Of a DNA stretch of 64,000 nucleotides, positions 3,201 through 60,081 are shown one piece after another; within the stretch, counting starts at the first letter, position 1; every line of letters starts with the position of its first letter. Origin of the DNA: Thalia democratica (taxonomy: Eukaryota); NCBI GenBank assembly GCA_965202585.1, contig OZ241828.1, positions 42,842,001 to 42,906,000 of the forward strand, in the 5' to 3' direction. The notes beneath the pieces were generated by a model. That model ran no database searches, was not told the DNA's origin, and worked only from the letters and a program-made list of their open reading frames with translations. The position numbers were made by a program, and so were the translations under genes.

Positions 3201-6200
3201 TTACTAGCTAAAAATAAGTAAAAAACCAACAAAACAAAAAGTATATAAAAACTACATATTGTTTTGTTTGGTTTTATTTTACTTACTTTTAGCTGATGTT
3301 ACCTTCCGTTTATTTATTCAAATCTATTAAACAATTGATGACCTCTTATAATTTGATATAAGAGTGAAATACTGTTTTCTTTATAATAATCTGTAAGACA
3401 AAAAAATAATTTGTCTCCTTGAAGATTCTTAAGTTAAGAACTTTAATAATTTGAAACAAATTACAACATCAAGTAGAATTTTATAGATAAGTTTAAAGAA
3501 TAAACAAAACAGACTTAAAAAACAAAGCAAACAATCTTAAAAAAAAGAAGTCTTATTTTTTTTTGTTTTTTACATCAAAGCCTAAACTTAAAAATGGAAA
3601 ATAATTAAAATTGAATTTATTACTATTGTAGAAAATAACATATAAAACAAAATGTTAAGTATGTAAAACCTAAGACATAAAGACACTAAAGTTATTACCA
3701 AATTTACCCCTTTTTTAAATGGTAATTACCAAATTTACCCACAGTATTCTATAATGTGTTTAATTTTAAAGAAGAAAAACAGTACTTTTTGAACTTAAAG
3801 CTTATTAAATATAAAAAATCGTAAAATTTCATAAGTTATTTAAATCTAAAAATTACAGTTAAAAACTAACTTATGAATTAAAAAGACATCTAATAAACAT
3901 TTATTAATATAACTTGTTATAAAGAAAGTTTACCCATAAAACAGGGGAATTTACCCCAGGTTAAGAATCGCTGGTTTAGAGCATAGGGGGGAGTCCAGCA
4001 TTTTTTTACTAAAGTTAATATTTGCTCTTAAACGAAAGTTTAAAGTACAAACTAGTAATTATATTTTATGTAATAATAAAGTTCAATAAAACTTTGAGAT
4101 GAAGTATTTTGTAATATTAAAATATATAATAACTTAAATCAGGGTTCGTGCGCGTCAGGCTAAATCAGGCTAAGTCAGGCTAAATCAGTTTTTTTGAAAA
4201 AAGTTGAAAAACGTTAGGCTAAATCAGTTATTTTATTTAAAAATTTGAGGCTCTCAGTTTTTCTCAGTTCAAATGCTTGAAAATTAAAAAAAAAATTGAG
4301 AAACCCTTTTAAGACCAAATTGATACGTGAATTTATTTCCAAATAAAAAATTAGTTATCAAAGAAAAAAACAGTCAGTATTTGTAAAAATAAATGCTGAA
4401 AACCTTTTGTAGAATCATTTAAAAAAAATTAAAAATCTTCATTGTTTTGTTTTGAGTAGATTATATATGTCATAATTATGAAAAATCATGAAAGAAATAT
4501 AGTTTAAACATTGCAGTTTAGTTCAACAACTTAGCTGTTTGTTTGAATTTGTTGACACCAGCTATGTTTTTCAGAGCTTAGTTGGTTGAACTGTTTTAAT
4601 TTCTAATTTAGAGGCTTTATACCAAATACTTTTTAGATTAAATCTCTTAGCAGTTTATTCATATGTTTTACTGTTTGCTTAAATTTATTAGAGATATTTA
4701 CAATACTAAAACTTGGCTTTAAGATATAAGTAATAAGTTTTGTGGGAGTACAAATTTTAGATACAATTAGTTTTTCTTCACAAAACAAAATGTTAAAGAT
4801 TTTTTATTCTATTTAAATCTGATACGACATCAACAATCACTGTATTTACTTAAAGTTTAGGATTTATAATTATGTATTAATTTTAAGTATTAGTCAAAAT
4901 ACTATAATAAACATATTTTACTTATTTTTTTAATCGTGTAAGCGTTTAATTTTAAATTCTAATAAAACACGACACGTCGTTTTATCAGGGTTGCAACTTT
5001 ACCTGGAAGCCTGGAAAAACATGTAATTTGGGAGATTTCGAAAAATTCTGGAATTTTGAACAAAAATCACTAGTAGTTCACTATAGTAGTTCACTAGTAG
5101 TTCAACGTTCACTAGTAAAATTTCGATTTGACACAAAAATTATATCATATAAATAAATAAAATTTTTCATCATCAAATTTTTTTATTATTAAAAAACATA
5201 TTTAAAGAAGCTTTACAGTATCTTTTCAATGTTTTTTTAATATTTAACACAGTTTCTTACCCTAAACTTAACTTTAAACTAAAAATAGACCCAAAAATGT
5301 GTACTTTCAAAAACATAGAAGAAATTTGGAAAACCTGGAAAAAATTTTGAAAAAACGAGTGGCAACCCTGTTTTATTATAAATCTACTGGTTATAATGTT
5401 TTTACTTAGTGCTTAATTAAATTGAACAATTACGTTAAGTAATATATATTAAATTTTTACACTAGTAATAGATTAGATATAACACTTATTTTAAAACTTA
5501 TCACTGAATTTGTTATGTTAAGGGCATAAGGGAGGTCAATCACCTTTTTCACAATTAAGTCTTATTTTATTGAGTTGTAACTAAGCTATGAGTTGCTTTC
5601 TGCAGATTTTAAAAGCTTGAAATATTTTTTAAAGATAAAGCTGGTTGAAGTCAGAGACTAAAATAGTACTAATCAAGTACCCCCAATACCTAAAACGACT
5701 TCTAAAGAGGATTTTCCTTACTTTGAAAAAATGTCAGGCTAAATTGGTCTCAGTCAGGCTAAATGAAAAAAAATTCGCGCACGAACCCTGTTAAATATAA
5801 CCTAGATATCTTAAATTTTCTACATTAACTTTAAATAATCACAAAACCTATATAACTATATAATTAAACAATAATTAATAGCAAACGAACTTGAAAATAA
5901 TTATCTTTGTTACCAAAAAATGATAAAAAGTCGATTGTTAAAAAAAAAAGGAAAATAAATTTGTTCAAAAAATTAACTGAGAAAGTTAAGAACGATTGCT
6001 CAAGAAATGTAATAAACAGATTTTTAGTGAAATAGTTTTTCTAACCTTTTTAGTTTAAACCTACAATAAGGAACATATGAATTTCTTAAACTTCAATCAC
6101 AAGTTACTTAAAGAATATTATATTAGCGAAAATAAACTGATAGCTTAGTTTTTGATAAAAAATAAGACTTAAAATCTTTTACCCCCTTAATTATAAAAAG

Positions 6201-9016
6201 TATAGGTGTGTTAGTATTTCGAGTTAAAATTGCAAATAAAAAAAAAGAAGAAAAAAACTAGTTTATTTTATAATTTTGATAGACTACACCTGATAGAGAG
6301 GGTCATGCTAAAAAGCTGGTAACAAGGTGTATGGCTGAGTGGTTTACTCTATGTCAGAATAAATACGATGTTCTCGCACTTGCCCAGGAAACAAATGTAA
6401 GTTTTATTTTTTTTTATTAACGACTAAATAAATAACTAAAAACTAGATTAAATGCTTAATATTTCTAGGCACTTCTGAGTCTTTTGGATGAACGTCCCCT
6501 TGGTATGGTAATAAAACTTGCTGTGTTGGCATTTAATAAACAATTTCTTGCTCTTGATTTGTGGATAAGCAAGAAAGTCGAAGAAAATGGTGCAGAATTT
6601 GTAGATGCTTGTGTGTACTTTTTAAAAGACCGCCTTCCTGAAATGACAAATTCTTTTAGTAAGTAATTTTTCATTTATTAATTTCCTAGAGTTCTTGAAT
6701 AATCAGTAATAGAGCTGAAATACCAAAAAAATAAAAGAGTAAATAAGTTAATGCTGCAAAGTACCATAGTATATAATATTCTTAAGTAGTATATTTCGAA
6801 GTTTTAAGAATCATGTTGAACTGTTTATAGTTAATTTTTTTTTTACTTTCTTTAAACTATTTATTATAACTTAATTAAAATTAAACAAGTTGGTTTTTAT
6901 TTGCATTTAACATATTAAGATAAAGTTATTTGTAAGTGAGTAAATTAATTAATTTTTTCAATTTGTAACTAACAATAAGAAATTTTATTATCTCTTTTTT
7001 TATTAAGCAAGCAATTTGGCATACTCAGGAATTGATAAAATATAAATGTTATAAAAAACCACAACAATAATTAAGTGAAGAACGTTAAACAGTTTCATTC
7101 TATTTAAATGCTTTTAATGTTCAGGGCTGCCACAAGGTCAAGAAAGTCAGGATGAGCAAAAAAAATGACAAAAGTCAGGAAAAAATTGGTGTTTTTGAAA
7201 AAAAGTCAGGAAGTTTGACAAAATTTGAAAAAACGTCAGATATTATCATTTCAAATTTACTAAATTCCTTATTTTTTAAAACCTTCAAATGGTTAAGAAT
7301 TAAATATAAATCTTTTAAAGTCAGGCTAAAATTGCAAAATTTTCTTAGAAATTTTAAAAATTAATTGGTTTCCAATGCCTTCATCTGGTAAAAAAAGTTA
7401 AATTTCTTTTATAAAACTGTAAATTTTCATTTATTAACATATTGAACAACTACCCTACTTAAACAAGCAGCTTTTGTATGCTTTTAATATTGATGATCTG
7501 TGGCAAGGACACTTCCATAGTGAAACTGTGATATATACACATAAGTTTATCTTGCAGAATTTTAGAATCAAAGTGTTTTTTATTTAAGTAAATAACTAAG
7601 TTCTTTATAATTGAGAACTAAATTTAGTTAATTATGTAACAAGTTAATGTGTATACTTGCCTCTATAATTTTTTCAAAGTTGTTTAAATTTGACAAATAA
7701 ATTATGTTTCCTCGTTTGTAACTTTTTGTAGAATAACTTTAGTTTTTTAGATATATAAGAGTAGATCTATTTGTTACAAAACTTATACTAAATGATAAAT
7801 TGAATATTTTATATAGTTTACTATTTTACGTATTTTTTTATTTGTTTTTGTATATTGAATGCTTAAGGTAGTATTTTATTAAACTAAGTGAACAGTTAAT
7901 ATAAGTAATACATGTTTTTAATGAATATTTAATATTATTATAAATTTTTACCTTTTAGGTTGTTTTACAACTTATTAATGCTAAGTCTGATTATAATTTG
8001 CTGATAGAGTTGTTTATTGCAAATACATCAATCATACACAAATGGTTCAAGTGATGTAATAGAACTAAAATTGGACTCAGCAGAAAAACTGTTGTTTTAA
8101 CCTGTATAAAAATAAGATTGAAAGCTTTATATATTTTTAAGTGTTAGATTATGTATTTTAGAATAAGTTAAATTAAGAGTTTATTAGAGAGTCAGGAAAA
8201 TTCTAGTAAAAAGCCAGGAAAAGTCAGGAATTTTTTTAACTTGATCTGTGGCAACTGTGAATGTTAATGTTAGTATTATTTTTGGTGTGAGTTTGTAATA
8301 TAAATTGTCGTGTGTCGGTTTACGACTTGCGCTCTACGTATGATTCAAGATTAAGCTAATAGTATTTTACACATAGTAAAAATATAGCTTGTTCATCCAT
8401 TCTTAACTTATTGTTTGCTATGACTTAAATACTGTTTAACAATAAAATGCAAGTCAACTTATTGTAAGTACATAATGGTTAAGCATTCGGTAGCAGATAA
8501 TACGAGTTAGTACACAGTATATACAACATACATTAAAAAAATTAAATAAAACACACAATATAAATTATTGGTATTTATCAATCAAAATAACCCATTTGCT
8601 TAATCTAAAACGTACTTACCTAACAACTAGAAACTTTAAGAGAACAGAGATTTAACACAATCTTTGACTTTTGGTAAAACAGTAAGTACTGTAAAAACAG
8701 CAATGATAACATGTTTACTGTTGTTTAAACTGAAGTTTTATTAAACATTGTTTATCAAAACTTAATTAAAAAAATAATCTTTTAAAGTTTCAGAACCTAT
8801 ATTAATTGTAGATATAATGAAATTTTAAATGATGTATGTATTCTGATTATTACTTGTTAAAAAATTGATGCAATACATATGTAAAAACTTACGTAGTAAA
8901 AATATTTTTTTTAAATATTATGCACATTCTAAATCAGGTTCCATACCAGATGCTGATGTGCCGTCTGAAATTGATACAATTTTAAAAGTCTTGCATACGT
9001 CCTTGGCTTCAAACTC
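201..9016 (+). CDS. CNOT1: CNOT1 exons 1-6 (numbered within the window): N-terminal HEAT-repeat region
   Basis: [15 protein letters not shown]...[18 protein letters not shown] and CMAEWF...[27 protein letters not shown] align with the remembered human WKSLDLIESLLRL...FSFPIKHCPDMLVLALLQ and [28 protein letters not shown]. Confidence 0.85.
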
Positions 9017-12000
9017 GTAAGTTAAATTTTAATATTTAATCAATATTTTTTGCTCAATACTTAGTTTTATAGATAGTAATAATGTTAATGCTCCTGAGAT
9101 AAAAATACATAAGATTGAAAAATGAAGTTAAAAGTCTTGAGAGCAACAATTAAAAGGCTAAACATTCAAGTTATAGTTGTATTGAGGTTGAATCTTTATG
9201 TGAAAGAAGTAAAAAGAATGATAAAAAAACTATTAGATAGTTAATGAAAAAAAGTTAATGAGTTGCTTTAAGACAAAAGTTCAAGATATTTAAATAAATA
9301 CTAAGAAAATGTAACACCTTATAGCAGTGCTTCTGAACCTTTTTCTAGTGGCGGAACCCTTTTCCAAAGTTTAACTTTTCCGCGGAACCCCTAATTTAAT
9401 TTTACATAAAATGTAAAATATAATATTTCCTGCAAAAACAAAAGAATTTCAGTGAAAAACGAGTTTTTTAGCAAAATACTATATCATTGTTAGAAATCAT
9501 ACCAATTGTAATAGTATTAAGCCGATTCAAACTCAAAGTGCGCCAGAGGCAATAGGTATTTTATGATTGTATAATAAATAAACGAAAACAAACATGATTA
9601 ATCGCAACGTCATAAAAATATTTCCTTGCATAATAAAAACAAAATGAGAGCTACAATAAATAACTAAATGAACATGAGCCTATTCAAGTTCACAGATTAC
9701 CGTAATAAACGGGTAAGATGCCTAACGAAAAATAAATAAAAAACATTTAGTGCGAAACTTGAACTTGTCTTTTTGCAGCAAGCATGTCAATGCGCGGCTG
9801 GATTTTAGATAGACTGAGATGGAGACAGGCAGATAAGGTTGGAGACTGCATACAGTTCCTTTGCTTCGTTTTAATGTTTGTTACATGCGAAAAGCCGGAC
9901 TTGCAAAGATGAATGATAAAAGAAATTTTACTGCACGCTTTGCTAAGAAGGGGTACTCTGAAATTGCACATATCCAAAAATCTAAAAGCTCCTTCCCTTT
10001 GAAACTCAATTTTAAATTTCTTTCTTCAGATAGTTGCAGCAATTCGTTTTCTGTATCTGTAGGAAGATACACTTCTTCTGAAGCAATATCACACATATTT
10101 AAAATCCATAAATTTCCGATGCGAACATCTTCAGGAAAATAATGTTGAAACTTTAAAGACAAAAGATCAAGATTGTTGTATATTTCGTCAGAGAAGTTAA
10201 ATTCTATGCATTTTTCATGGGCCTCATCAAACCGATGAAACATCGCAAAATTACCATTGCTAACCTTTTTCTTCCAAAAATTAATTCTATTTTTTAACGC
10301 CTCAATCTTGTCTGTCATAAAAAAAATAGAATTTTGCTTCCCTTGCATGCTTAAGTTCAAAGCGTTCAATTCTTCGAAAATATCGGTGAGATAAGCTAGC
10401 CTGGCCAAAAAAACATCATCTTCAAAGAACTTCACTAATTCTGAGCCTTCATCTTTAAGAAAGGTGAAAACCTGCTTCTTTAATTCAACGAGACAAACCA
10501 GTGTCCGCTCCTTCGACAGCCAGCGAACTTCGTTGTGATAAAGAAGTCGCAGATGGTCAGCATCTAACTTTCACATAGGTCTTTGAGACATCTGGCCTTT
10601 GTGTCCTTTTCTTTATAAAATAAACAGTTTTAATCGACGCTGAGAGAACTTTTTGTAAACAAGAAGGAAGATGATTTGTTGCCAAATTTTCTCTATGTAA
10701 AAAACAATGTATTTATTTAGCTTCAACTGCTTTATCATTCATTTTCCTCACTACATCATTTTTGGACCCAGTCATAGACGCTGCACCGTCAGTACAAATA
10801 CCGACACATTTATTCCACTCTAAACCCTTGCTGATGAAATAATTTTCGACACTTTTCATAACTTCAACAGATATAAATATATATATATACAATATAAATG
10901 AATATCAAAAAAAATATCATTGAGTTATAATAATTAAACAGAAAAAGCAATTACTTAAATAACAAACTTTAAAACTTTGCTAACACACAGACATTTAAAC
11001 ATTTTTATCATGTAAATCTTAAAAATTATTTCAAACTCAATTTCTGTTAAAATTTTAAATACCTGGCCACAACTTTTAAAAATTAGAGTATCATTTTTTA
11101 TCATGTAAGTTTAAAAAACTATTTAAAATTCAATTTCTGTTAAAAATTTTATAGACCTAGCCAGATTTTTTGAAAATTATAGTAGCATTTTTTAAGTAAA
11201 AAATAAGCTTTTATACATACTAAATTTTAAATCAAGCTAATAGACATCTTTTTAAACATATTTAGAGTATTTGAAACAATATAATATACCAGAAATAAGT
11301 TTCTAATAAAGATGTTTTATATAGTTTTATTGTGTAAACATCTAGAATTTGTTATGATTGCTCCTACCTTGTTTGCTTAAGTGATAATACAAGCATTTTC
11401 ATGACTTCACTAAAAATAGAAATTCAAAAAATTTGGGCAACCAGGACTGCTATTAATAATGAATACCCATTAAAAGTCCTACTGCTAGATACACACTAAG
11501 CAGATCAATGAATGCTATAATTATATATGTTTTCCATTTTATGTGCTCCATTTTTTTTGAAATTTTATGATTTATGTTTTTTTTCTTTCAAATTTCTTTT
11601 TTAAATTTCGAAAGGCTTCGCGGAACCCCTGAGAGGCGTCGCGGAACCCTAGGGTTCCGCGGAACCCCATTTCAGAAGCACTGCCTTATAGTATTGTAAA
11701 TTTGGCCTACTTAAAAGGCCACTGAACTGCAAGGTATACTTATTTGTAACAAAATACGTAGTACTAAAATAAATTCAACTGTACTTTGTTAACAGTGGTT
11801 AATTTTTTTAGGCGAGTTAAAGAGTTATTAAGTGAAGAGGTAAAAAGTTATATTCAAAAAGTTTGCAATGTTTACCTAAAACCAGTAAGACCAGCAACCG
11901 CTCCAACAATAACAGCTCCATCTCCTAAAGTTACCCCTACACCTAAGCGTCTGCAACCAGGTAATATTCAACCAATCAATGCTTCGTTTAAACCTGAAAT

Positions 12001-15000
12001 TAAAGTGCCTAAAAAGACGATACAGCACAATCCATCTCAGCAGTTAGCAGATGCATCTAAATGCAATTCAAAACCAAATGAAGCTTTAATGACAGTAAGA
12101 CCGTCTAATCCAAAACAAATAATAACGAACCCCAATCAACCTCCCATCGGCCCTCCTCTACGATTTCAGCCTAGTTTACCACACAGGTATATTGGCGAGC
12201 CGGCACTACCAACTGTGTCGTCTGATTATAGGAATCCACGATTGAATCCATTGAATCAACATTTACCAATGAACAAAAAGATCGATTTTCAAGATTTAGG
12301 CAGTTCACTTTAACCAAGAGAGATTCCTCATCCTCTTACAGGTATAAAATATTTCTAAACTTAATATGTTATATTTTTATTATGTTAAATTTTTTTTCTA
12401 AGTTTATTCAAAATAATTTAAAAAGTTTTTTTTATACAAAAAAAGTTTTGTAGTTATGATGTTTGTAGAGACATATTTCGCATAAATTTTTTACCGAACT
12501 AAGTAAAGTTACTTTTTAACTCCAAAAATATATTTAGTATCATAGAACAATTGTAAAGAATTATTTTCTTCTAAACGATAATATGTAAGGTTTTTTAAAA
12601 TTATTTTCTAAATTTTAAAATGCACATATTAATACTTAGACAACTAATGGTAATTTTAAAAATTGAAAAGATTACTTAAATTAAAGTTTTAATTGGAAAA
12701 TATGATGAGTAAAAGTTTGAAAATGATATGATATGTAGATATAAAGTTAAAGCTTGGATTTAAATTATAAAGGCAGTAAAAATAGTGTAATTCAATATCA
12801 ATAAGTTTCTAAAAAATGTAATCTAATAATTTTGTTTGAAATAGTGCAGGTGTTGAAATAATTATAGTACAGTCATAACACTTGTATTAATCTAGGGTAA
12901 TTCACCTTCCTCTTGAGTTAACACTTCACGTTGAATTAGCATTTTTTATCCGATATGTTGTATTAAAGTGTAAGTTTGAAATAGTTAAATCAACTTAGAA
13001 AATTACAAAACAAAAAAAAAATCTTAAATACAGGTAAAAATGTTATAAAGCCTAAAAAAAGTTGATGTTAACAAAAAACAGTGCAGTTAACATCTAAAAT
13101 CTCATGTTTAAGACAAATTAAATTGTATAAAATCTTTTCTATAGTTTATACTAAAAAAACAGTCCGTGTGATTTACATTAGCCTCATTTTATATATATTA
13201 ATAACATATTTAGTTTTAAACATATTGAAATAAGCCATTTAAAAAAAAGTATTTCTTGAGTTTGTGATACCATTTTGTTCAAACTTTTTTGTTTCGTTCG
13301 AAGTGCGAACTCAAAAAGGAAGGTGACCGTACTGTACATAAGTGTTCAAAAAATATTTGTTTTTGAAAAAAAAAAATTTCTATGTTATAAAAACCTTAAC
13401 CTAATAAAATTTTGAACAAAAGTTTAATTGTATATGTTTTAATTTTTTTATATAGACCTTTATGAATTTTCATCACCGATCTGAAATAAATCAGAACAAT
13501 AAGTATAGGGAATAAAGACAACAAGAAAAACTCAATATTTTTTACTTTGGATTATTTTCCACAACATAACTTTTTGAAACCTTGTAACTAAAATTATTCT
13601 TAAATAGTACAATAAAGTTATAAGTTAAAAAAAATACTAAACCATTGTTTTCAATTTTTATTGCTAAAAATTTGTAATAAAGTTTATGTGTATACAAATT
13701 GGTACAACGTTAATTTTCAGACATGATTTCACCATTAGGTGTTGCACCTATTAAGTCAAAGGATCTTTCTAACATTATTGGTTATCCTGAAAACTTATCG
13801 TCAGGTAAGATTTTTGAATATTTAAAAACTGATTTACAAAACAATAATTATATTATTAAGGGTTGACTCACATTCAGGTTAGCTATGGTTTAAATTTTGA
13901 GAAACTCAAGGCTGTATTTTGTTAAAACTTACTTCAGCTGAGTTGATAAGACTTAAATTAGTTTATATATTTCTACTTAAGTTCTATCATATATTAAAAA
14001 AAATATATAGTGATGCTTTCTATATTTAATTAAAGTAATCGCCTTGTGGCTAGCTTTATTTCAATAAACATTTAAATTGATTATTTGAGGGCTGAAATTA
14101 AGCTTTAAAAGTTTTAAAAAACAACTTAATCCTTGGCTTAAAATTCTACAAATTAAAATCAAGTTGTAACAAAAGTGATTCACCCCAATGCTTTAAAACT
14201 AGTTTTTGTGACTCAAAATGCAGCAGCCCCGATCGTTGTATACATCGTTGATTTATATAACCCTCTAAGTTTGTCATGTGTATTTTGTTAAAAACCGACT
14301 GATGATCTGGTATACTAATAAAAACCAGCAAAAGATAGTTTCAGATAGATTTTGTTTTTTTATTTTAGTATATAATCTTATACTTAACAAATTAAGTGTT
14401 TTTCATATGCTGCATTGTTTTTGTATCAAGAAATATGGTAACATTAGTGATTTACTGATAATTTAAATGATAAACAGTCTGTTTGGAACCAATCTAGGGT
14501 AACTCATGCTGTTTTGAAAGTTTCATGGTTGACACACACTTATATACTCATAATAACTCAAGCTAGATTGTGTTTTTAAAAAACTCTGACCAAGTCTGGC
14601 TATTTCGATTTATTTTTAAAGCTCTGCTAGTTGGATAAGTTTCGTTAAATCTTGAGTATTTACTAGGCTTTAATTTGTTTTCTAATAATTGTCTTGTTGT
14701 TTTATTTAGGTAAATAGTTATTTGAGCTTGATAACAGAAACTTTTTTCTATTTTTGCAACATATATCTTCTATTTTTTCATAAGCTTAAGTTGACTCCGC
14801 TATTTTGATGTAACTCAAACTTTTTTGTCATAAAGAGTGGCAACTCTCAGTTTTCAAAAACTCCGGCTTTAATGAAGTTTTTTTTTGCAAAACTCTGACT
14901 AGTTATATATTTTCCTTAAATCTGAGGCTAGTTTTATGACTTAGAAAAAAAAAATTTCTTAATGTTTTATTTTTATCCTTTCAAGACATTAAATTATTTT

Positions 15001-18000
15001 GATATTTTTATAATTTTTTAGGGCAATCAAGCTTGATTGATAGTTATATTTTTCAGCTATTGACTCTTACTACTGTATTTAGTCAGTTTTTTCGTAAACT
15101 CGGACTAGTCATATGTGTCCCAGGCTAGATTTAGTCACTCAGGCTTGCTTTTTTCTTTAAAGTAGTGTTTTTAACAACTAAAAAAAATAACTAGAACTTT
15201 TACTTAAAAGTTATCACCGTATCCAGATCTTATTTTAGGATTCGGATCTGGTCTTATCGGAAACTTTTTTAAAACTAGTAACCTGTCGGATCAAAATCCA
15301 GATTTTACTTATATTAAGGATCTGGATCCTTTAAATTTCAAAACTCCCGTAAATACGCTTTTGCTCTTGATCATAAACTTCAGAATGTCTAGTTTAAGTT
15401 TCAGATTTTTCTTAAAATCTAGTGTAATTAAAAAAAATCTATAACATCTAGTGTTAGTTTCAAAACTACCTTAATAATTTTTTACTTTAAAGCACTTGGT
15501 GAAGACCACTGATATAGAATTTGTTAAGCAGTATAATAATAACTGAAGGAGCTGAAACGAGTTAAGAAAATTAAGTATCTACCGGGTCTATAACAATAGG
15601 GATCCAGTAGATAACTAAATTTAAGTACTTAAGTAGCCTAAGTTTTTCATTCCAAAAAACAGTAAAACTGATATAGCTAAAGTTGTTTTTATCACAGTTG
15701 ATGTAAGTTCAAACCCGGCTATGATATCACCAGATGATGATTTTTCAAAGAAAATGGACAGCAAAATTAACAAATACTTTGGTGATTTGTATAATCTAAG
15801 TCCTAAGGATTCACAAAGCGGTATAAATCAAGTAAGTAACAAAAAATCATAAATTTCAAACTTTACTAGTTTTTTCAATCTTAAGATAAATAGTGTAAAG
15901 TTTAATTAAATTTTTTCAGCTGTCAATGATTTCAGCCCTCTATAAAATATAAATTAATTTTCCAAGAAGTTAGTTTTTTTATTCTAAGTATAAGATAGTT
16001 CTTATTTTTATTTATAAGAAAAAACTTTTTAATATTTAGTTGTCTTAATAGTATAATATGACAAAATAAAGCTTGTTAACATCTATAAAAAATCGGTTGA
16101 AAAGTCGAAATTTTTTTTTTGAACATATGTGCTAATAGTTTGCTATATTAGATCTTAACGAAGCAAGTTTTTTGTAGTATACAATAATAACAAAAATTTG
16201 CACAGTACTTACAACAAATGACGCACGTTTCTCTGTGTTATTATTATATTTAAACATATTTTTTACCTCAAAAATTTCCCTGTCCATGCTAAAAGATACC
16301 ATATATACACTACTTTTAACAAGGCACATTTCATTCTGACTTAAAATTAGGCCTACTCAACCTAATTTGCCGTCATTAAGGCTACTTATGTTGCCTCTAA
16401 GTAAGACAGACCTTAAAATATTTTTAAAACTTAAATACTATTGATTTTAAACTTTGTATGCGATTAAAATGTTGCTTAAACCATTTATTAATAAAGGTTT
16501 AAGTAATGTAGTTGTTTTTATAAAAATGTTTGTTTATTTGCAGATGCTGGTAACATTAGAGCATTTAAAGAACGGAGACTATATTGGCAGTAAAACTTTT
16601 GAATGCTTTATGAATCATCTTTTTAAAGAATACAACTTTTTAGATAAAGTTAGTTCTAAAGTTTTAAATTTAGAACTTCTGTTTTAACCATTTTGCTTAA
16701 CTGTGTTTTTTCTAAGTTTTCATTGGTATTAATTCTAATTAGCTCAATGTTAATTACTATTTCAATAATTTAACTCAAGCATCAAATGTAAATTATTAAT
16801 GTTTACAGTATCCAGAAAAAGAGTTACATATAACTGCAAAACTTTTTGGTGGAATCATAGCTCGAGATCTCGTCGGCACTATTCGTATGTTTGAAATTAA
16901 TATAGAGTAAAGTAAACTGTATTCTTTCTTATGTTGAAAACTAATATTCTACTTCCACTAATTTATAAAATGAATATATATGATGAAAATTAAATTTCAC
17001 TGAGCCCTATTTGAAAGGGAACATCAATAGTAAGTTTTTTTCAAAATACGAAATTTAAAAATGCTACATATGTTTCATGCAACGCAGTCTTCAGCCGTTT
17101 GATTTAAAATTTACATACAAACAAACAAATTTTACCGCAATACGTTTTATAAACATTTTTGTTTTGTGTAATTTGTATGTTTGAATGTAAATTGTAACTC
17201 AAATAGCTGAATGTTGCTTCGTATGAAATATATGTACAGGGTTGCCACTTTACCTGGAAACCTGGAAAAACCTTAAAAACCTGGAATTTGAGAAATTTTG
17301 AAAAAAACCTGGAAAAACCTGGAATTTTTAATAATTTTAACATTTTCAGTAGTAAAGTTTCGATTTGACACAAAATATCTATCGTATGTTTAAGGTTTTT
17401 TTGTAATCATCAAAATTTTTTTTTATTAAAAAACACATTTAAAGTAACTTTACATGATCTTTTCAATGTTTTTATACTATTTAACATAGTTTCTTATGTA
17501 TAAATTAACTTGAAACTTCAAATAGACCCAAAAATTTCTACTTTTGAAAAACCTGGAAGAAATTTGGAAAATCTGGAAAAAATTTTGAAAAAACGAGTGG
17601 CAACCCTGTATGTAGTATGTACCATTTTAAAATTGCGCATTTTGAAATTAACTTACTCATTAAATGGCCTTAATTAAGTAACACTTTCAAAACTAAATTA
17701 AACTATAAGTAATATTAAACTTATTGATTAAAGTTAAGTATGCTTGAGAAATTTAAAATGTTTAAAACAAAAAAATAGCAATAGGACTTGCCATGAGATA
17801 CGTCTTAGAAGCTTTAAGAAAACCATCAACAAGTAAACTCTTCAAGTTTGGTATAGTAGCTCTAGAAAGTTTCAAACACAAGCTTATTGAACTACCAGAC
17901 TATACTCGTTATCTAGCAAGTATCCCAAGTTATGAAATGTTTCCTGATTCTATTAAACAGGTTTTTATTATTTCTATGTAATTTTTTTGTTTTTTGTTTA

Positions 18001-48000: not shown

Positions 48001-50469
48001 TTATTTAATATATTTAAATGAGAATAAAATAGTTAAATTAGACTGTAAAGACAAAAATATATCATATACATAAAAAAATTGTCATCATCAAAATTTTTTT
48101 TATTAACAATTACATCTAAAGTAGCTTAACAGTATCTTTTCAATGTTTTGATACTAATTAATACAGTTTCTTACCTTAAACTTAATTTTAAATTAAAAAT
48201 AGACCCAAACAGTTTTACTTATATAAAACTGGAGAAAATTTACCAAAAACATGGCAACCAAAAAAAAAAAAAAAACATGGCAACCCTGAATACATTCAAT
48301 TTTAAATATATGTTTTATAGTAAAAAATAAAAAGTATTTTAAGTTTATAAATAGATCTAAATTATAGAGTCGGTAAAAGTATCTAATCTTCAAGTAATAC
48401 TGAAAATTAACAATTCAGTATTTTTACTTTAATGGATGTCTGTACTTGTATGTTTTCAACAAATGATTGATTTAACTAAACTTTAATTAGTCTGTTTCGC
48501 TTGACTATTTTTATAGATATTAAATATTCTAAACACAATAATCTAAGTATATAAAACTGAAAGAAGCTTTTCTGATCGCGGAAAACAAAGTCTTTCCAAA
48601 CTAACTGGATCCGGATCTGGCCAAATCTCAGCTATGATTTGGCCGGATCTGGATTTAAAAAAAAAATAGGATCCGGTAGTTTTAATATGCACTAGATTGT
48701 TTACAAAATTGATTTTCTGTTTTTTTCGGACCTTGAAATATTATTGACAACTAATTAAAAATAGTATTAAAAGATTTAATTATAGTTAATTGCTGTAATT
48801 AAAATTTAAGCTGTTAATTTGTAAAGCAATATCAGCTTATGGATTTTTTTAGCATTTATCTTCAAGAGTTTTACGCAAAAGCAAAATCTACTTTTTTTTT
48901 TCAAGTATGTACTTTTAAACAATTTATCTATAGCAGTTATCGTTATTCTTGATATTTAATCAAATTAAAAATTAAATGATCACTGTTTTAGCAGATTTTA
49001 AATTGACGTGCATATTAGAAATAGTATTCTATTTTATTACTATAGTTCTCATGTTAAATATTTCTTACTACTCGGCAAGTTAAAAATTGACTTGAATAAA
49101 AAAGCTAAATTTTTATTTCTGTTATAACTGTTCAAAATATAGTTTTAATTGTTTGCTAACAAAAGATCCTAGTGAAGTGTGTTGATTCGTTGACACACAG
49201 AAACATATGTTGGTAGAATAAAGGAAGATTATTGTATAATTTGTTTTTATTTCTGTTATATATTTTAAATAGCTCGAAAAACTTAACAGTTGTCACCGAG
49301 TGGTAATGAACGTTACAACTTACCTTTAATGAATGCCCTTGTACTATATGTTGGTACTAAAGCACTTGATGATCTTCGTACAAAAGGAATCGCTTCCAAC
49401 ATAGGTAACATATCACATACTCCGTACATGGACATTTTTCAGTCTTTATCAGTTGACCTTGACAACGAAGGAAGGTAAATATTTAGTTTGAAAAAACCTA
49501 TATAATTAACTTACTATTTCATGTTTTTTTATCATAAGTATTTGTAACAGTTTCTAAGCCTTAAAAAAAAGACAAATATAAAATTTACATTAAACTAAAA
49601 CGAATTTTCTTAAAATATTTTAACATTTATTAATATTTTTCCCGAAAGTTTTTCAAAAGGTAGACAGAAAAATTGTAGTGATATAAGTACTTATAATAAT
49701 AATTTTTGTAGGTATTTGTTTTTAAATGCAATCGCGAACCAGTTAAGATATCCCAACTCCCACACTCACTATTTCAGCTGTGTGCTTTTGTATTTGTTTG
49801 CTGAAGCAAATTCTCAAGTTATACAAGAACAAATAACCAGGTTTTTTTTTATTGTTCTTGTTTAAAACATTGTTCTGGCTATTTTTTTATCATTCGAAAT
49901 TAAAAGTGAAAGCAACTTTGGTATTCTTATTAATATTATTTTTTACGATTTAAAAATTTGTTTATTTTTTAATTTAAAATGGATTTTATTTTAAACAACA
50001 ATTACTATCTATGAAAAATAAATGCTCCAAGAAAGCTAGTAGTACCAGTTTGAACGTAATTTATTAATTAAGATGAATTATTTTTGTATCAAGGGTACTC
50101 CTGGAAAGATTGATTGTCAACCGACCTCATCCATGGGGTCTTCTCATAACGTTCATTGAGCTTATTAAAAACCCAACCTTCAACTTTTGGCAGCATGATT
50201 TTGTTAAGTGTGCTCCTGAAATTACAAAGTTTGTTTTTTTTTTGTTATTGTTTTTTTATGCATAAGCTCATCAATCATGTATATTTTTGCTTTACAGACT
50301 GTTCGAGTCTGTAGCACAAAGTTGTCAGCAGTATGTACCTACATCTGCAGCTATCGGTGGATTCGATCAACAACCACAACAAATATCTGCTACAAAGACC
50401 CAATCCATGTCAGCAGGGAACCAGAATAACCAACAGCAACCAACTGCTGTTTCTGTTATTTCTTCCTAA
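201..50469 (+). CDS. CNOT1: CCR4-NOT transcription complex subunit 1 (Not1), spliced gene; 5' exons lie upstream of the window
   Basis: Hand-traced exons: 201-334, 2509-2638, 2796-2909, 6283-6396, 6469-6658, 8938-9016, 11812-12341 (in-frame TAA at 12311), 13721-13804, 15698-15831, 16544-16648, 16809-16884, 17779-17960, 20388-20528, 29651-29833, 29955-30131, 30418-30543, 30676-30864, 31216-31332, 31408-31511, 31581-31710, 31806-32003, 32162-32413, 32530-32634, 34075-34206, 36792-36854, 37845-38000, 38256-38471, 38697-38887, 39546-39726, 40766-40987, 41253-41405, 41579-41742, 41873-41996 (or 42011), 42316-42423, 45625-45798, 46474-46623, 49290-49474, 49712-49840, 50094-50228, 50298-50469. All junctions are GT-AG and phase-compatible. 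Diagnostic peptides: [77 protein letters not shown]. Confidence 0.97.
1126..1500. mobile_element. CAGGG-family MITE
   Basis: Terminal inverted repeats (TIRs) cagggttgcc...ggcaaccctg; subterminal cctggaa repeats; degenerate 6-bp TSD ggatgg/agatag. Confidence 0.8.
2041..2402. mobile_element. TIR MITE with gcacg/cgtgc subterminal repeats and a telomere-like cctaaccct core
   Basis: Inverted ends ggtatcctaaagg..gtcaaatatgca and tgcatatttt..cctttaggtacc; a related fragment lies at about 39810-39975. Confidence 0.6.
3170..3330. repeat. Imperfect foldback with roughly 65-bp arms and a short loop, probably an old MITE
   Basis: gaatagatttgaacaaataaatgtaaggta...aaaacaa is complementary to ttgttttg...taccttccgtttatttattcaaatctatt. 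Confidence 0.7.
4140..5790. mobile_element. Non-autonomous CAGGG-terminal DNA transposon with 6-bp TSD
   Basis: Perfect 15-bp TIR cagggttcgtgcgcg; TSD ttaaat/ttaaat; tcaggctaaa subterminal repeats; contains a nested MITE. Confidence 0.9.
4986..5370. mobile_element. CAGGG-family MITE nested in 4140-5790
   Basis: TIR cagggttgc/gcaaccctg; TSD ttttat/ttttat. Confidence 0.9.
7122..8259. mobile_element. CAGGG-family element, aagtcagg subfamily
   Basis: Termini cagggctgccaca/tgtggcaactgtg; aaagtcagga repeats at both ends; TSD aatgtt/aatgtt. Confidence 0.8.
9325..11683 (-). mobile_element. hAT transposon (Buster/SPIN/Charlie-like), internally deleted
   Basis: TIR cagtgcttctgaa/ttcagaagcactg; perfect 8-bp TSD ccttatag; gcggaaccc subterminal motifs including the palindrome gcggaaccctagggttccgc at 11641-11660. 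Confidence 0.95.
9747..10870 (-). pseudogene. Degenerate hAT transposase, C-terminal half
   Basis: [54 protein letters not shown] and the dimerisation region ending LCKSGFS...QVSH; internal stops and a frameshift near 9920. Confidence 0.9.
11812..13804 (+). CDS. CNOT1: CNOT1 exons 7-8: Pro/Asn/Thr-rich low-complexity linker
   Basis: ORF 11786-12313. Acceptor ttttttag at 11811 is phase 2 and matches the exon 6 donor. Exon 8 (13721-13804) is phase 1 at both ends. The 3' end of exon 7 is ambiguous because of the TAA at 12311. Confidence 0.7.
15698..17960 (+). CDS. CNOT1: CNOT1 exons 9-12: TTP-binding HEAT domain
   Basis: [18 protein letters not shown]; [25 protein letters not shown]; [14 protein letters not shown]. 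Confidence 0.9.
17237..17608. mobile_element. CAGGG-family MITE
   Basis: TIR cagggttgccac/gtggcaaccctg; TSD tatgta/tatgta. Confidence 0.92.
18993..19255. repeat. Diverged direct duplication (about 95-bp unit, period about 165 bp) in a GC-richer intronic block
   Basis: ctattgta..aaagcggacttt..aagtcctag.tttgctc.aatt..agag.c.ctgagaaa at 18993 and 19158. Confidence 0.7.
20584..20974. mobile_element. CAGGG-family MITE
   Basis: TIR cagggttgccaaa/tttggcaaccctg; TSD taagag/taatag. Confidence 0.88.
21660..22760 (-). mobile_element. Degenerate Penelope-like retroelement (RT plus GIY-YIG remnant)
   Basis: Minus-strand [18 protein letters not shown]...[22 protein letters not shown], and [16 protein letters not shown]; many stops. 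Confidence 0.75.
23751..24066. mobile_element. hAT MITE
   Basis: Termini cagaggtcgacaa/ttgtcaaccctg; perfect 8-bp TSD gtttaaac. Confidence 0.88.
29651..31332 (+). CDS. CNOT1: CNOT1 exons 14-18: MIF4G (CAF1/DDX6-binding) domain
   Basis: [11 protein letters not shown]; [14 protein letters not shown]; [26 protein letters not shown]; [12 protein letters not shown]; [10 protein letters not shown]. Confidence 0.92.
31581..34206 (+). CDS. CNOT1: CNOT1 exons 20-24: CNOT9-binding (DUF3819) region
   Basis: [14 protein letters not shown]; [17 protein letters not shown]; [12 protein letters not shown]; [15 protein letters not shown]. Confidence 0.9.
32791..33480. mobile_element. Older CAGGG-family element
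   Basis: Termini caggcttgcca/tggcaattctg; TSD 4/6 (tgtcaa/tatcta); its ggctag motifs also occur at about 14490-15150. Confidence 0.55.
33555..33870. mobile_element. CAGGG-family MITE with a degraded 3' end
   Basis: cagggttt..aacctggaatcctggaaaaacc and the internal aaaaatctatcat/aaagtagcattacagtatctttt core shared with other copies. Confidence 0.7.
35026..35719. mobile_element. TTAA-flanked foldback element (Kolobok- or Sola-like), nested in a short CAGGG-type shell (34978-35744)
   Basis: ttaa|ggccatatgggg...cccctatggcc|ttaa; internal arms similar to 43214-43882. Confidence 0.75.
36792..50469 (+). CDS. CNOT1: CNOT1 exons 25-40: C-terminal Not1 domain plus a Q/S/T-rich tail
   Basis: [11 protein letters not shown]; FHQMPYQRI; [21 protein letters not shown]; [31 protein letters not shown]; stop TAA at 50467-50469. 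Confidence 0.95.
37161..37510. mobile_element. Degraded CAGGG-family MITE
   Basis: cctggaatttgacaat, aaaaatctatca and aaagtagctttacagt cores; termini eroded. Confidence 0.6.
39183..39409. mobile_element. hAT (Charlie-type) MITE
   Basis: Termini cagggtttccc/gggaaatcctg; TSD ttttagaa/ttctagat, resembling the nTCTAGAn target preference. Confidence 0.75.
40390..40626. mobile_element. Young MITE with a 47-bp TIR
   Basis: accacagatgtttttgtg(a/t)taaaactttattccgactaacggcgttt matches 46/47 between the ends; flanked by acat/acat (or by TA if the termini are ccacag). Confidence 0.88.
42718..43068. mobile_element. CAGGG-family MITE
   Basis: TIR cagggttgccaaa/tttggcaaccctg; TSD ttgtca/ttgtca. Confidence 0.92.
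43214..43882. mobile_element. TTAA-flanked, nearly fully palindromic foldback element
   Basis: ttaa|gggcatagggg...cccctatgccc|ttaa; arms of about 330 bp are complementary over almost their whole length. Confidence 0.92.
44056..44370. mobile_element. Inverted-repeat element embedded in (TA)n microsatellite
   Basis: tttcacactgagcccaccttaagggcttt at 44088 and aaagcccttcaagtgggctcagttgaaa at 44311; (TA)n tracts on both flanks and in the middle. Confidence 0.6.
44814..45303. mobile_element. Older TTAA-flanked element related to 43214-43882
   Basis: ttaa flanks and a shared core (tatcttctcttacaattttcaagcaatc). Confidence 0.45.
46942..48694. mobile_element. TAGTG-terminal element with ccggatc subterminal repeats; contains a 3' fragment of a CAGGG MITE (about 48040-48288)
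   Basis: tagtgatcc...gcacta; clusters of ggatccgg at both ends; the same motif clusters occur at about 15220-15330, 52930-53020 and 60535-60665; no clear TSD. Confidence 0.55.
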
Positions 50470-56890: not shown

Positions 56891-59688
56891 AATATTAGTT
56901 TGATTAAACTTTGTGTTTTTTTTTTAATAATTTTTATACTCAGAAATAGTATACGAATATCAGACTTGAATTTAAAAAGAATATAGTAGTTTTATTTGGC
57001 TAATGTAAAAGTTTGGTTTGTGTAACGTTAACATGGTCCAATTTCTTTTTTTACAAAAATTTACTTTAACCCTTACTTGAAAGTTAAGATTATAGTTTTT
57101 AAATGCCTTTCTAATAACATAAAAAATTTTAATGACTTATAAGTTATAGTTTGTTTAATATTTTTTCTTATTCTGTTTCATGATTTTTCCATAATTTTAA
57201 ACTATAAATTAAAGATCTAGGTTCTCCTTCATTTTTTAAGCAATTAACCTAGAATTTTCAAAAAGTGTTTCTTACATTAAAAAAATTCTAGTTCAATCTG
57301 TTTTAAATTGAAAAGAATTTTATAACTAAATTTAAAAACATAACCGTACATAGAAGTTTTTTTTATAAAATCAGGGTGGCCAGTAGGGTGCATCTATTGC
57401 CCAAACCTTGGAATTTCGCATAGTCAATTTTTTTAAGGTGGGAAATCACATAAATAGACAGTACAAAAAAAATCGCTTCTTAGCTTTAAGCCTATTGGAG
57501 CTAAGTACTTTTGAAAATTTTGCTTTATGCCATTATTTTCGAAGATAAACAAGGGGGTCACTTTTTTTTAAGTTAGCTTTATTTTATAGAACTTTATCCG
57601 AACTATACGTTACTTATTACAGTTTTTTAATAACAAGTTTATTTTCAAAATATAAACCATTAAAGAATGTAATTTCATTGGTTTTTCATTGGTTAGAAGC
57701 AAACTAAAACAGCAATAAAAAGACTACTTAGTATAAAATTTATCTTCTCCTACAAGATATATGAAATTTAATTTTTGTGAAGTAAATAGTTGCAAACTCC
57801 TTGTTTGCGTGCAAGTGCATTTTATTTGGCTGAATGTCGAAATGAAAAAAATAGCTCAACATTTTCCTTTTAAAATATGAAAAAGTAGTAATAACGGTTT
57901 CTTGAAAAAGGACCTATGAAAATATACCATCAAAAAAAAAGTTAATTCACTCTAAGTTAGTTATTTATTGTAACACTTCAGTACAGGGTTTCCACATACT
58001 TAGTATACTCAAGATAACTCAGGACAGTTCATTTTAGGTTTTTTATTATAAGTTAGCAATGATGAGTTTAAGACACAGGAATACATACCAACATTGTATG
58101 GTACATCATCAAGTCAGCCCTATCTAAGTATAACTGGTTAAAAATTGCCAATTTATTTGCAATTACTGCTTTGTTATGAATCAAATAAACAACTACTGAG
58201 ATATAAAATGAAAAGCTCAAAATTCTATGCTTTAAAACATCAAGCTTTTAAAATTGTTTAAGAAGAAGAAAACAGAACATTATAAAAAGGCTAATTTTGA
58301 TGCAAAAAATTTTGGTGCATTTTGTTATAATTTTGAAAAGATACTATCACACCACTCGTCATTAACTAAGGTACTTAAGGCAAAGGAATAGAAATCAACA
58401 AAACCCTATAGACAAAAGATTATGAGAAAAAAATAAAACAAAAGCTACAAATCCTTTTCTATCTCAAGAAGAAAAAAACAACATCGAAATCGACTTGCAG
58501 TTTCTTCAAAGCATGAAAACTGACAGAAAAGCTTATTATAGTTGTTTAGAAAAATCAAGCTTTAAGAGAATTGAGAAACGCAAGGAGAAAGTAGCCAAGA
58601 AAATCTCAGAACCATCTTGCTCCATCTCATCAGTGGTGCTGCAAGGTCAAGAAACTTCTGACATTTCCCATGATGATGATTCTTGCATTTGAGAATTGGA
58701 AGTGGAATCAATTAACCAGCATCCTAAGAAACGATCGCAAAAGATATTTTCAAAAAAGGTACATCACTATTTTTACCTGAAGACTTTCTTACAGACGACG
58801 TGTCAGTTAGAGCTGTAAGAAGAACTAGAATTACTCCGGCTGAATTATCTACAATTGCTTCTGTTTTAATAGAAATAGGAGCGGGGAATAAAGATTCTGT
58901 TAGTTTAAGTTGTTTATATACTGGAAAAAATTATAACAAAATAATTTTTAAAGATTCTTCCACTTTTAAGAAAAACTGGACTGCTCCAAAAAACTTTTTG
59001 GTGCATTGGGACGACAAAACTATTCAAACATTGGATGGTAGTTCAACGGAAAAACGCTTGTCTGTTTCTGTATCAGGAAAACAGCATAAGCTTTTAGGAA
59101 TTTCTTCATTAGGAGTAAACTTGAAAAATATTTACGGCGAAAAAGTTTGTAATTAGGTGATGGTCTTTTTCAAGAGTAGAACTGTGTAAATAGCATTAAT
59201 GGTATGGTTTTTGACACTACTAACTCTTATACAGGGAATTACTCAGGTGTGACATTCCGAATGAGTCTTGGTAACCCATTATTTTGGCTATCTTGCAGGC
59301 ATCGTGTACTAGAGCTGCTACTAAATAAAGTTTTAGTTGTTAAGCCATTAAAAAATCAAAAACATCTGAGATAGTAGTCTTCAAAAGTTTAAGAAAAATT
59401 GGCGAAATATCCTGCAATACTTTGATGGAATTTAGGTTTTGAATTTATAAATTTCTTCTAAAATTCGTCAAAAATATCAAAGTTTTCGATTGTCTTGTCT
59501 GCAGGATGATTATAAAGAGGTTGTCAAACTAGCCTTAATTTACATTAGATTTCAGCCCTATCACTCTTCATCATCCTCGAGGTGTTCCTAAAGCTAGATG
59601 CATGAGCAAGTTAATTTACGCTCTTAAAATAGTTTTGTTTTCACAACTTAACTCATTGAAAACAAATTTAGACACCACTATGTCCTGG

Positions 59689-59800
59689 ACAAGACGTTAA
59701 AATGTATCCGTGGTGTGCGACTCGATAACTGAAAGGTTTTTTTGTTCACCAGGTCCAAGGACCAAATATTCGTAATACGTATTTTATTCGTTCAATAAAT
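59689..59800 (+). repeat. SINE-like interspersed repeat, copy C, inside the transposase pseudogene
   Basis: acaagacgttaaaatgtatccgtggtgtgcgactcgataactgaaaggtt...ttttattcgttcaataaa. Confidence 0.65.
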
Positions 59801-60081
59801 TATACTTGTCAAAAAAATCTGAAAAGTTTTGTTGATTTCTGCATAAACTGCTACCTTCCCTACTGGATCAACTGTACTGTAGCTTCTGCAGCTTCTGGCA
59901 ATGACTTTGGTCTGTTAATCACACTTCAAAAATACAGAAATAACAATAAATTATGTGCAACCTCTGCGTTGGGTGCTATGAAAAACCATGTCTGGTATCT
60001 TGTTGAAGAACTTGTTCCTTTAGTTTGTTTGATGATTATACCAGTTAACCAGTCAAAGCTAAGGTTGCTGATGCTTTAAAT

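Follow-up and report, generated by a model that had tools for sequence, protein, structure and literature searches.

Exon 7 of CNOT1, a linker exon in the 64,000-nucleotide stretch of Thalia democratica DNA analyzed here (the window), is interrupted in frame by a TAA codon. We conclude that the assembled haplotype likely carries a private nonsense allele (TTA>TAA) here, probably heterozygous, in a gene that is spliced in the ordinary way and without recoding; a private nonsense variant in a reference haplotype is an ordinary, known kind of finding. The codon at 12311 to 12313 is TAA in the assembly and in one public sequencing run (X1) and TTA (Leu) in the DNA of run X2 and the RNA of runs X3 and X5. 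An earlier note on this DNA had offered a hidden intron, an upstream donor, stop readthrough, and a variant allele or error as explanations, and the T at 12312 in X2, X3, and X5 supports the last of these. A test for a sense codon at 12311, set in advance, was positive in the same three runs, the codon being TTA instead of the CAA that the note had supposed.

From 11813, the exon 7 frame is open for 166 codons (window positions 11813 to 12310; RVKELL...DFQDLGSSL). At the base composition of the exon itself, about 10 stops are expected per 176 codons, and the chance of a 166-codon open run is about 4e-5. Because a run of this length is so improbable, the frame is taken to be truly coding; the remaining two frames of the exon contain many stops. 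Nine further in-frame codons (PREIPHPLT) lie 3' of the TAA and lead to a donor (acag/gtataaaa) at 12341/12342, and the acceptor of the exon is ttttttag/g at 11811/11812. The donor is in phase 1, and its GAC codon is completed by the start of exon 8 at 13721. The GC content is 0.39 in exon 7, with positions 12187 to 12318 included, versus 0.215 in intron 7, and the AT-rich composition begins past 12341, not at the stop. Within the gene, exon 7 has the N-terminal HEAT region upstream and the TTP-binding domain downstream, and it encodes a proline- and glutamine-rich, fast-evolving linker with no Pfam match. These results agree with the earlier note, which had placed an in-frame TAA inside a coding CNOT1 exon (here, in the frame from 11813), had set the shift to intron composition at 12342 instead of at the stop (borne out by the GC values), and had named the gene as CNOT1 (borne out by the Pfam matches on the neighboring exons). 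The exon borders, the 12341 donor with its phase, and the join to 13721 that it had proposed were confirmed by RNA contigs. The features are collected in the table.

Features of the CNOT1 linker exon and its surroundings, in window positions
Feature	Positions	Strand	Remarks
Exon 6, 3' end	8987-9016	+	Joined to 11812 in X3 and X5; consensus of loose ends, 1 mismatch
CNOT1 linker exon (exon 7)	11812-12341	+	530 nt; RNA contigs X3 rec17 and X5 rec22 unbroken over 11812/11813-12338(+3)
Candidate hidden intron	12187-12318	+	132 nt; acacag/gtatat ... ccaag/agag; coding sequence retained in mRNA contigs
In-frame TAA	12311-12313	+	Middle base 12312 is A in the assembly and X1 only
Intron 7	12342-13720	+	1379 nt; GT..AG; phase 1; joint 12338>13718, cut +3, in X3; same join in X5
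Exon 8	13721-13804	+	84 nt; loose end past 13804 matches window 15698-15727
Exon 9, start	15698	+	Window 15698-15727 matches loose end of RNA contig

The neighboring exons match the Pfam families CNOT1_HEAT, CNOT1_CAF1_bind, DUF3819, NOT1_connector/ARM_Cnot1, and Not1, and PF16417, PF16418, PF16415, and PF04054 all match, in that order, in the part of contig C4 that the window covers. The ordered domain set of CNOT1 (HEAT, TTP_bind, CAF1_bind, DUF3819, connector, and Not1 C-terminal) is present in one gene, which, going by its sequence, is a CNOT1 orthologue; it lies on the + strand and takes up roughly 2.5 to 50.5 kb of the window. Exon 7 is single-copy in the 802-Mb assembly, which was searched for further copies and for haplotigs of it with no match. 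Searches of the genome with the HEAT and TTP-binding domains returned the window locus as the sole match. Searches with the Not1 and CAF1-binding domains additionally found two tandem, compact CNOT1-like paralogues on a chromosome-scale contig, C6, at 28349380-28358660 and 28373600-28382760 (L003-L007). The C6 copies match the window gene from the CAF1-binding MIF4G to the Not1 C-terminal domain only, at 40-72% amino-acid identity, and HEAT, linker, and TTP-binding exons were found neither at these copies nor elsewhere in the genome. Because the HEAT, TTP-binding, and linker exons occur at the window locus only, the window gene is, as judged from the assembly, the genome's sole full-length CNOT1.

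The presence of two further CNOT1-like loci raises the alternative that the gene in the window is a decaying copy, with the working CNOT1 located elsewhere. Such a reading could also draw on the window haplotype, where three of the four differences seen are derived and nonsilent. Against it, the C6 copies extend from MIF4G to the C terminus only and are 40-72% identical, the HEAT, TTP-binding, and linker exons are confined to the window locus, and the contigs of spliced mRNA agree with the window locus at >99%. We regard a decaying copy as extremely unlikely.

Several other elements were seen in and beside the gene. Just 5' of exon 7, in intron 6, a GC-rich palindromic element at 11610-11675 (cgcggaaccc...gggttccgcggaacccc) resembles a mobile element of the small inverted-repeat kind. 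Also in intron 6, the block at 10400-10840 is richer in GC and contains minus-strand open frames; it is probably what remains of a transposable element. Repeated open reading frame fragments with shared motifs, ..LKIDPK.. among them, lie in CNOT1 introns at 4956-5350, 17207-17674, and 48130-48327 and probably belong to a dispersed repeat family; one of these repeats has a further match close to the C6 paralogues (L007, about 8585-8757). On the 3' side of CNOT1, at 58426-60076 on the + strand, long open frames of 88-142 amino acids follow one another with no evident introns and may represent a transposon-derived gene.

We placed the public contigs of runs X1, X2, X3, and X5 on window positions 11700 to 13900 and read the base at 12312 in each. 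The allele evidence consists of Logan contigs, in which one branch is kept per bubble. The runs with a strong share of 54 sampled exon words were X1 (organism A, sample S1; share of 1.00), X4 (organism A, sample S1, a genome-sized run; 0.85), X3 (organism A, sample S3, 47 M letters; 0.85), and X2 (organism B, from a separate study; 0.93). Marine metatranscriptomes, X5 among them, held small shares, and the related sequences were all of marine-plankton origin. Between samples, the sequences differ by 0.3-0.5%. Run kinds are not recorded for X1 to X4, and X3 is termed RNA here from its small size and its spliced contig.

X1 gave a single 5596-nt contig with 0 differences over 2201 window bases and an A at 12312. 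Because it is identical over all of these bases, X1 probably represents the source reads of the assembly. X2 gave one DNA contig across the whole stretch with 7 substitutions, and the A>T change at 12312 is among them. In X3, a 3340-nt contig covers 11812-12338(+3) and then 13718(+3)-13804, with GT..AG ends at the joint and a T at 12312; its loose ends match window positions 8987-9016 and 15698-15727. Since both the joint and the loose ends match exons, this contig is spliced cDNA over exons 6 to 9. The 7375-nt metatranscriptome contig from X5 belongs to a close relative; it has the same architecture and a T at 12312, and it differs from exon 7 of the window by 25 substitutions and, in net length, by 9 nt. 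The 12341>13721 GT..AG joint, together with loose ends in exons 6 and 9, identifies both the X3 and the X5 contigs as derived from mRNA.

These contigs bear directly on the splicing explanations of the earlier note. One of them was a 132-nt intron at 12187-12318 whose removal would take out the stop in frame. Its borders are GT..AG and its length is divisible by three, judging by the dinucleotides alone. However, both RNA contigs cross the region unbroken, and the joint 12186/12319 was sought in them and not found, on the understanding that such contigs may miss a minor isoform. The GC content of 12187-12318 is 0.386, versus 0.392 in the rest of exon 7 and 0.215 in intron 7. Furthermore, a pyrimidine tract precedes each of the three verified acceptors but not the AG at 12318 (cactttaaccaag). 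The unbroken RNA, the exon-like GC content, and alignment gaps in multiples of three (described below) rule out a hidden intron at 12187-12318 as the normal mechanism. The note's other splicing proposal, a weak phase-1 donor upstream of the stop, fared no better: joints from 12299 or 12302 to 13721 were sought in the RNA contigs without success, the 12341>13721 joint was the one seen, and both upstream donors were accordingly rejected.

The translation of the 166 open codons was compared with 1.84 billion representative proteins. This search returned a single match, P0001, at 57% identity and no full-length annotated protein. P0001 is an open reading frame called on L002, a 4.2-kb marine-metagenome contig from a relative more distant than that of X5, in which the homologous exon occupies 1693-2240 with the same borders and a frame that is open throughout. 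The two exons have in common the acceptor context, the ...REIP..T/gtataaaa end, and the donor. At the position of the TAA, L002 has TTT (Phe) in the stretch ctt TTT cag aga gag att cct, and the window counterpart reads ctt TAA cca aga gag att cct. When the two exons were aligned as nucleotides without constraint, all 8 gap runs were multiples of three (6, 3, 3, 15, 9, 3, 6, and 9 nt), for which the chance is (1/3)^8, or about 1.5e-4; those of 3, 15, and 9 nt fall within 12187-12318. Because the gaps all come in threes, the frame has been kept across the whole exon, with 12187-12318 and the codons past the stop included. The differences from L002 are flat by codon position (44/40/40), a test that cannot separate coding from noncoding sequence, and this flat pattern would be expected for a disordered linker with weak constraint on residue identity.

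L002 also has a gt at the corresponding position, which with an ag would give an in-frame removal of 159 nt with the same RE IP junction. This likeness, along with the GT..AG borders and the in-frame removal in the window, could favor a bypass of the stop in the carrier, by a 132-nt exitron or an upstream cryptic donor, that would yield a shorter functional protein or act as a nonsense-mediated decay (NMD) switch. On the other side, neither RNA contig skips the segment, its acceptor lacks the pyrimidine tract, its GC content is exon-like, its indels are all in threes, its frame is open in relatives, and in the other samples there is no stop that would need bypassing. We consider such a bypass very unlikely. 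More improbable still, in our estimate, is a true null allele that is partly rescued in carriers by splicing out 12187-12318, in which a latent exitron would buffer nonsense mutations in the disordered linker.

Programmed readthrough of the UAA-C, also suggested in the earlier note, would give full-length CNOT1, and the frame does stay open for nine more codons to a phase-correct donor, with the protein downstream conserved. That conservation, however, is the conservation of an ordinary coding exon. Programmed readthrough requires a conserved stop, and this stop is conserved in no other sample or relative: it is absent from X2, X3, and X5, which have TTA, and from L002, which has TTT. The nonconserved stop contradicts programmed readthrough, to which we assign next to no probability. 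UAA is the least leaky of the stop codons. RNA editing was considered as well and is ruled out because the T is also present in X2 DNA; to our knowledge, A-to-U is not a known type of editing.

We therefore return to a private nonsense allele, which the earlier note had paired with an assembly error. The variant is in the data of one individual (X1, A) and absent from the other samples (X2 and X3, T), X1 being perhaps the assembly source. The Logan k-mer contig built from the X1 raw reads, with a mean word depth of about 68, reproduces the A at 12312; the A is thus abundant in raw reads and no polishing artifact, and if X1 is the assembly's own read set, it is no independent proof of the base. 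The alternative is a base-calling or consensus error in an animal with TTA on both alleles. The A is limited to the assembly and X1, its probable source, and the site lies at the boundary between a T run and an A (cttTTAcc versus cttTAAcc), a context in which some platforms err. Nevertheless, the depth-68 contig that reproduces the A is otherwise identical to the window over 2201 bases, the change is a substitution and not a homopolymer-length error, and the same haplotype has two more private substitutions, at 8998 and 13766. A base error is therefore unlikely in our view and less likely than a real private nonsense allele.

The two accompanying substitutions, both derived, are in neighboring exons. 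At 8998, in exon 6, the window has C (ACG, Thr) versus A (AAG, Lys) in X3 and X5; at 13766, in exon 8, it has T (CTT, Leu) versus C (CCT, Pro) in X2, X3, and X5. We looked for exon 8 on the relative's 4.2-kb contig L002 for the Leu/Pro site, and the exon is absent from that contig. Of the four coding differences seen, in all, on the assembled haplotype, three are nonsilent. With the changes at 8998 and 13766 alongside that at 12312, this looks like a genuinely distinct haplotype.

The sampled words also bear on heterozygosity. X2 has one single-nucleotide difference in exon 7 and is missing 4 of the 54 sampled words, which gives its share of 0.93. X3 has two (11992 and 12312) and is missing 8, which gives 0.85. 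The share of X4, which comes from the same sample as X1, equals that of the TTA-bearing X3, while X1 stands at 1.00; these are shares of sampled words and not of reads. Because X4 misses exactly as many sampled words as X3, there is a hint that its contig kept the other haplotype and, hence, that the reference animal is heterozygous.

On the favored reading, a single-base change would have turned a TTA leucine codon into TAA on the haplotype assembled from the reference individual, and the normal codon at 12311-12313 is leucine. CNOT1 is expressed and spliced ordinarily, from 9016 to 11812-12341 and on to 13721. The reference animal would be heterozygous, with the TTA allele supplying CNOT1 protein and the TAA allele presumably a null. 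Exon junction complex-dependent NMD removes mRNA with a premature stop upstream of exon junctions. The stop here lies 28 nt before the exon 7/8 junction, with dozens of further junctions downstream, and by the general rule the mRNA of the TAA allele would be degraded. A homozygous null at this CNOT1 is unlikely to be viable because the exon and the HEAT and TTP-binding domains are at a single locus. Severe effects would be expected if this stop, which follows the N-terminal HEAT region, were homozygous, in keeping with a heterozygous carrier.

The result matters mainly for annotation: gene callers run on this assembly will truncate or split CNOT1 or invent a false intron unless 12311-12313 is treated as a TTA variant. 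More generally, because the assembly is that of a polymorphic marine animal, a single in-frame stop in it should first be compared with RNA and with other individuals, and only then should recoding or regulated splicing be invoked. A truly heterozygous stop would be one example of the recessive-lethal load in a wild individual, which is expected and unsurprising.

Taken together, these results can be set against several known systems. The exons at window positions of about 2,500 to 50,500 carry the full domain set of CNOT1/Not1, the scaffold of the CCR4-NOT deadenylase; the difference is that exon 7 of the window is a fast-evolving Pro/Gln-rich linker without a Pfam match. Like exitrons, 12187-12318 lies within a coding exon, is bordered by GT..AG, has a length that is a multiple of three, and resembles an exon in composition, but here the spliced form is in neither mRNA contig, the acceptor is weak, and the support consists of the border dinucleotides. 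As in the programmed readthrough of Drosophila headcase and kelch and of many insect genes, an in-frame stop is followed by open, protein-like sequence; in contrast to those genes, the stop here is not conserved, and the sequence beyond it is the normal remainder of the exon in other samples. A further likeness is to the rare heterozygous loss-of-function alleles of reference assemblies. The present case differs from them in that heterozygosity is deduced from the share of sampled k-mers in another run of the same sample, and it resembles them in having a one-base stop in an otherwise intact, expressed, essential gene, with the stop in the reference individual only and a sense codon in other individuals and in relatives.
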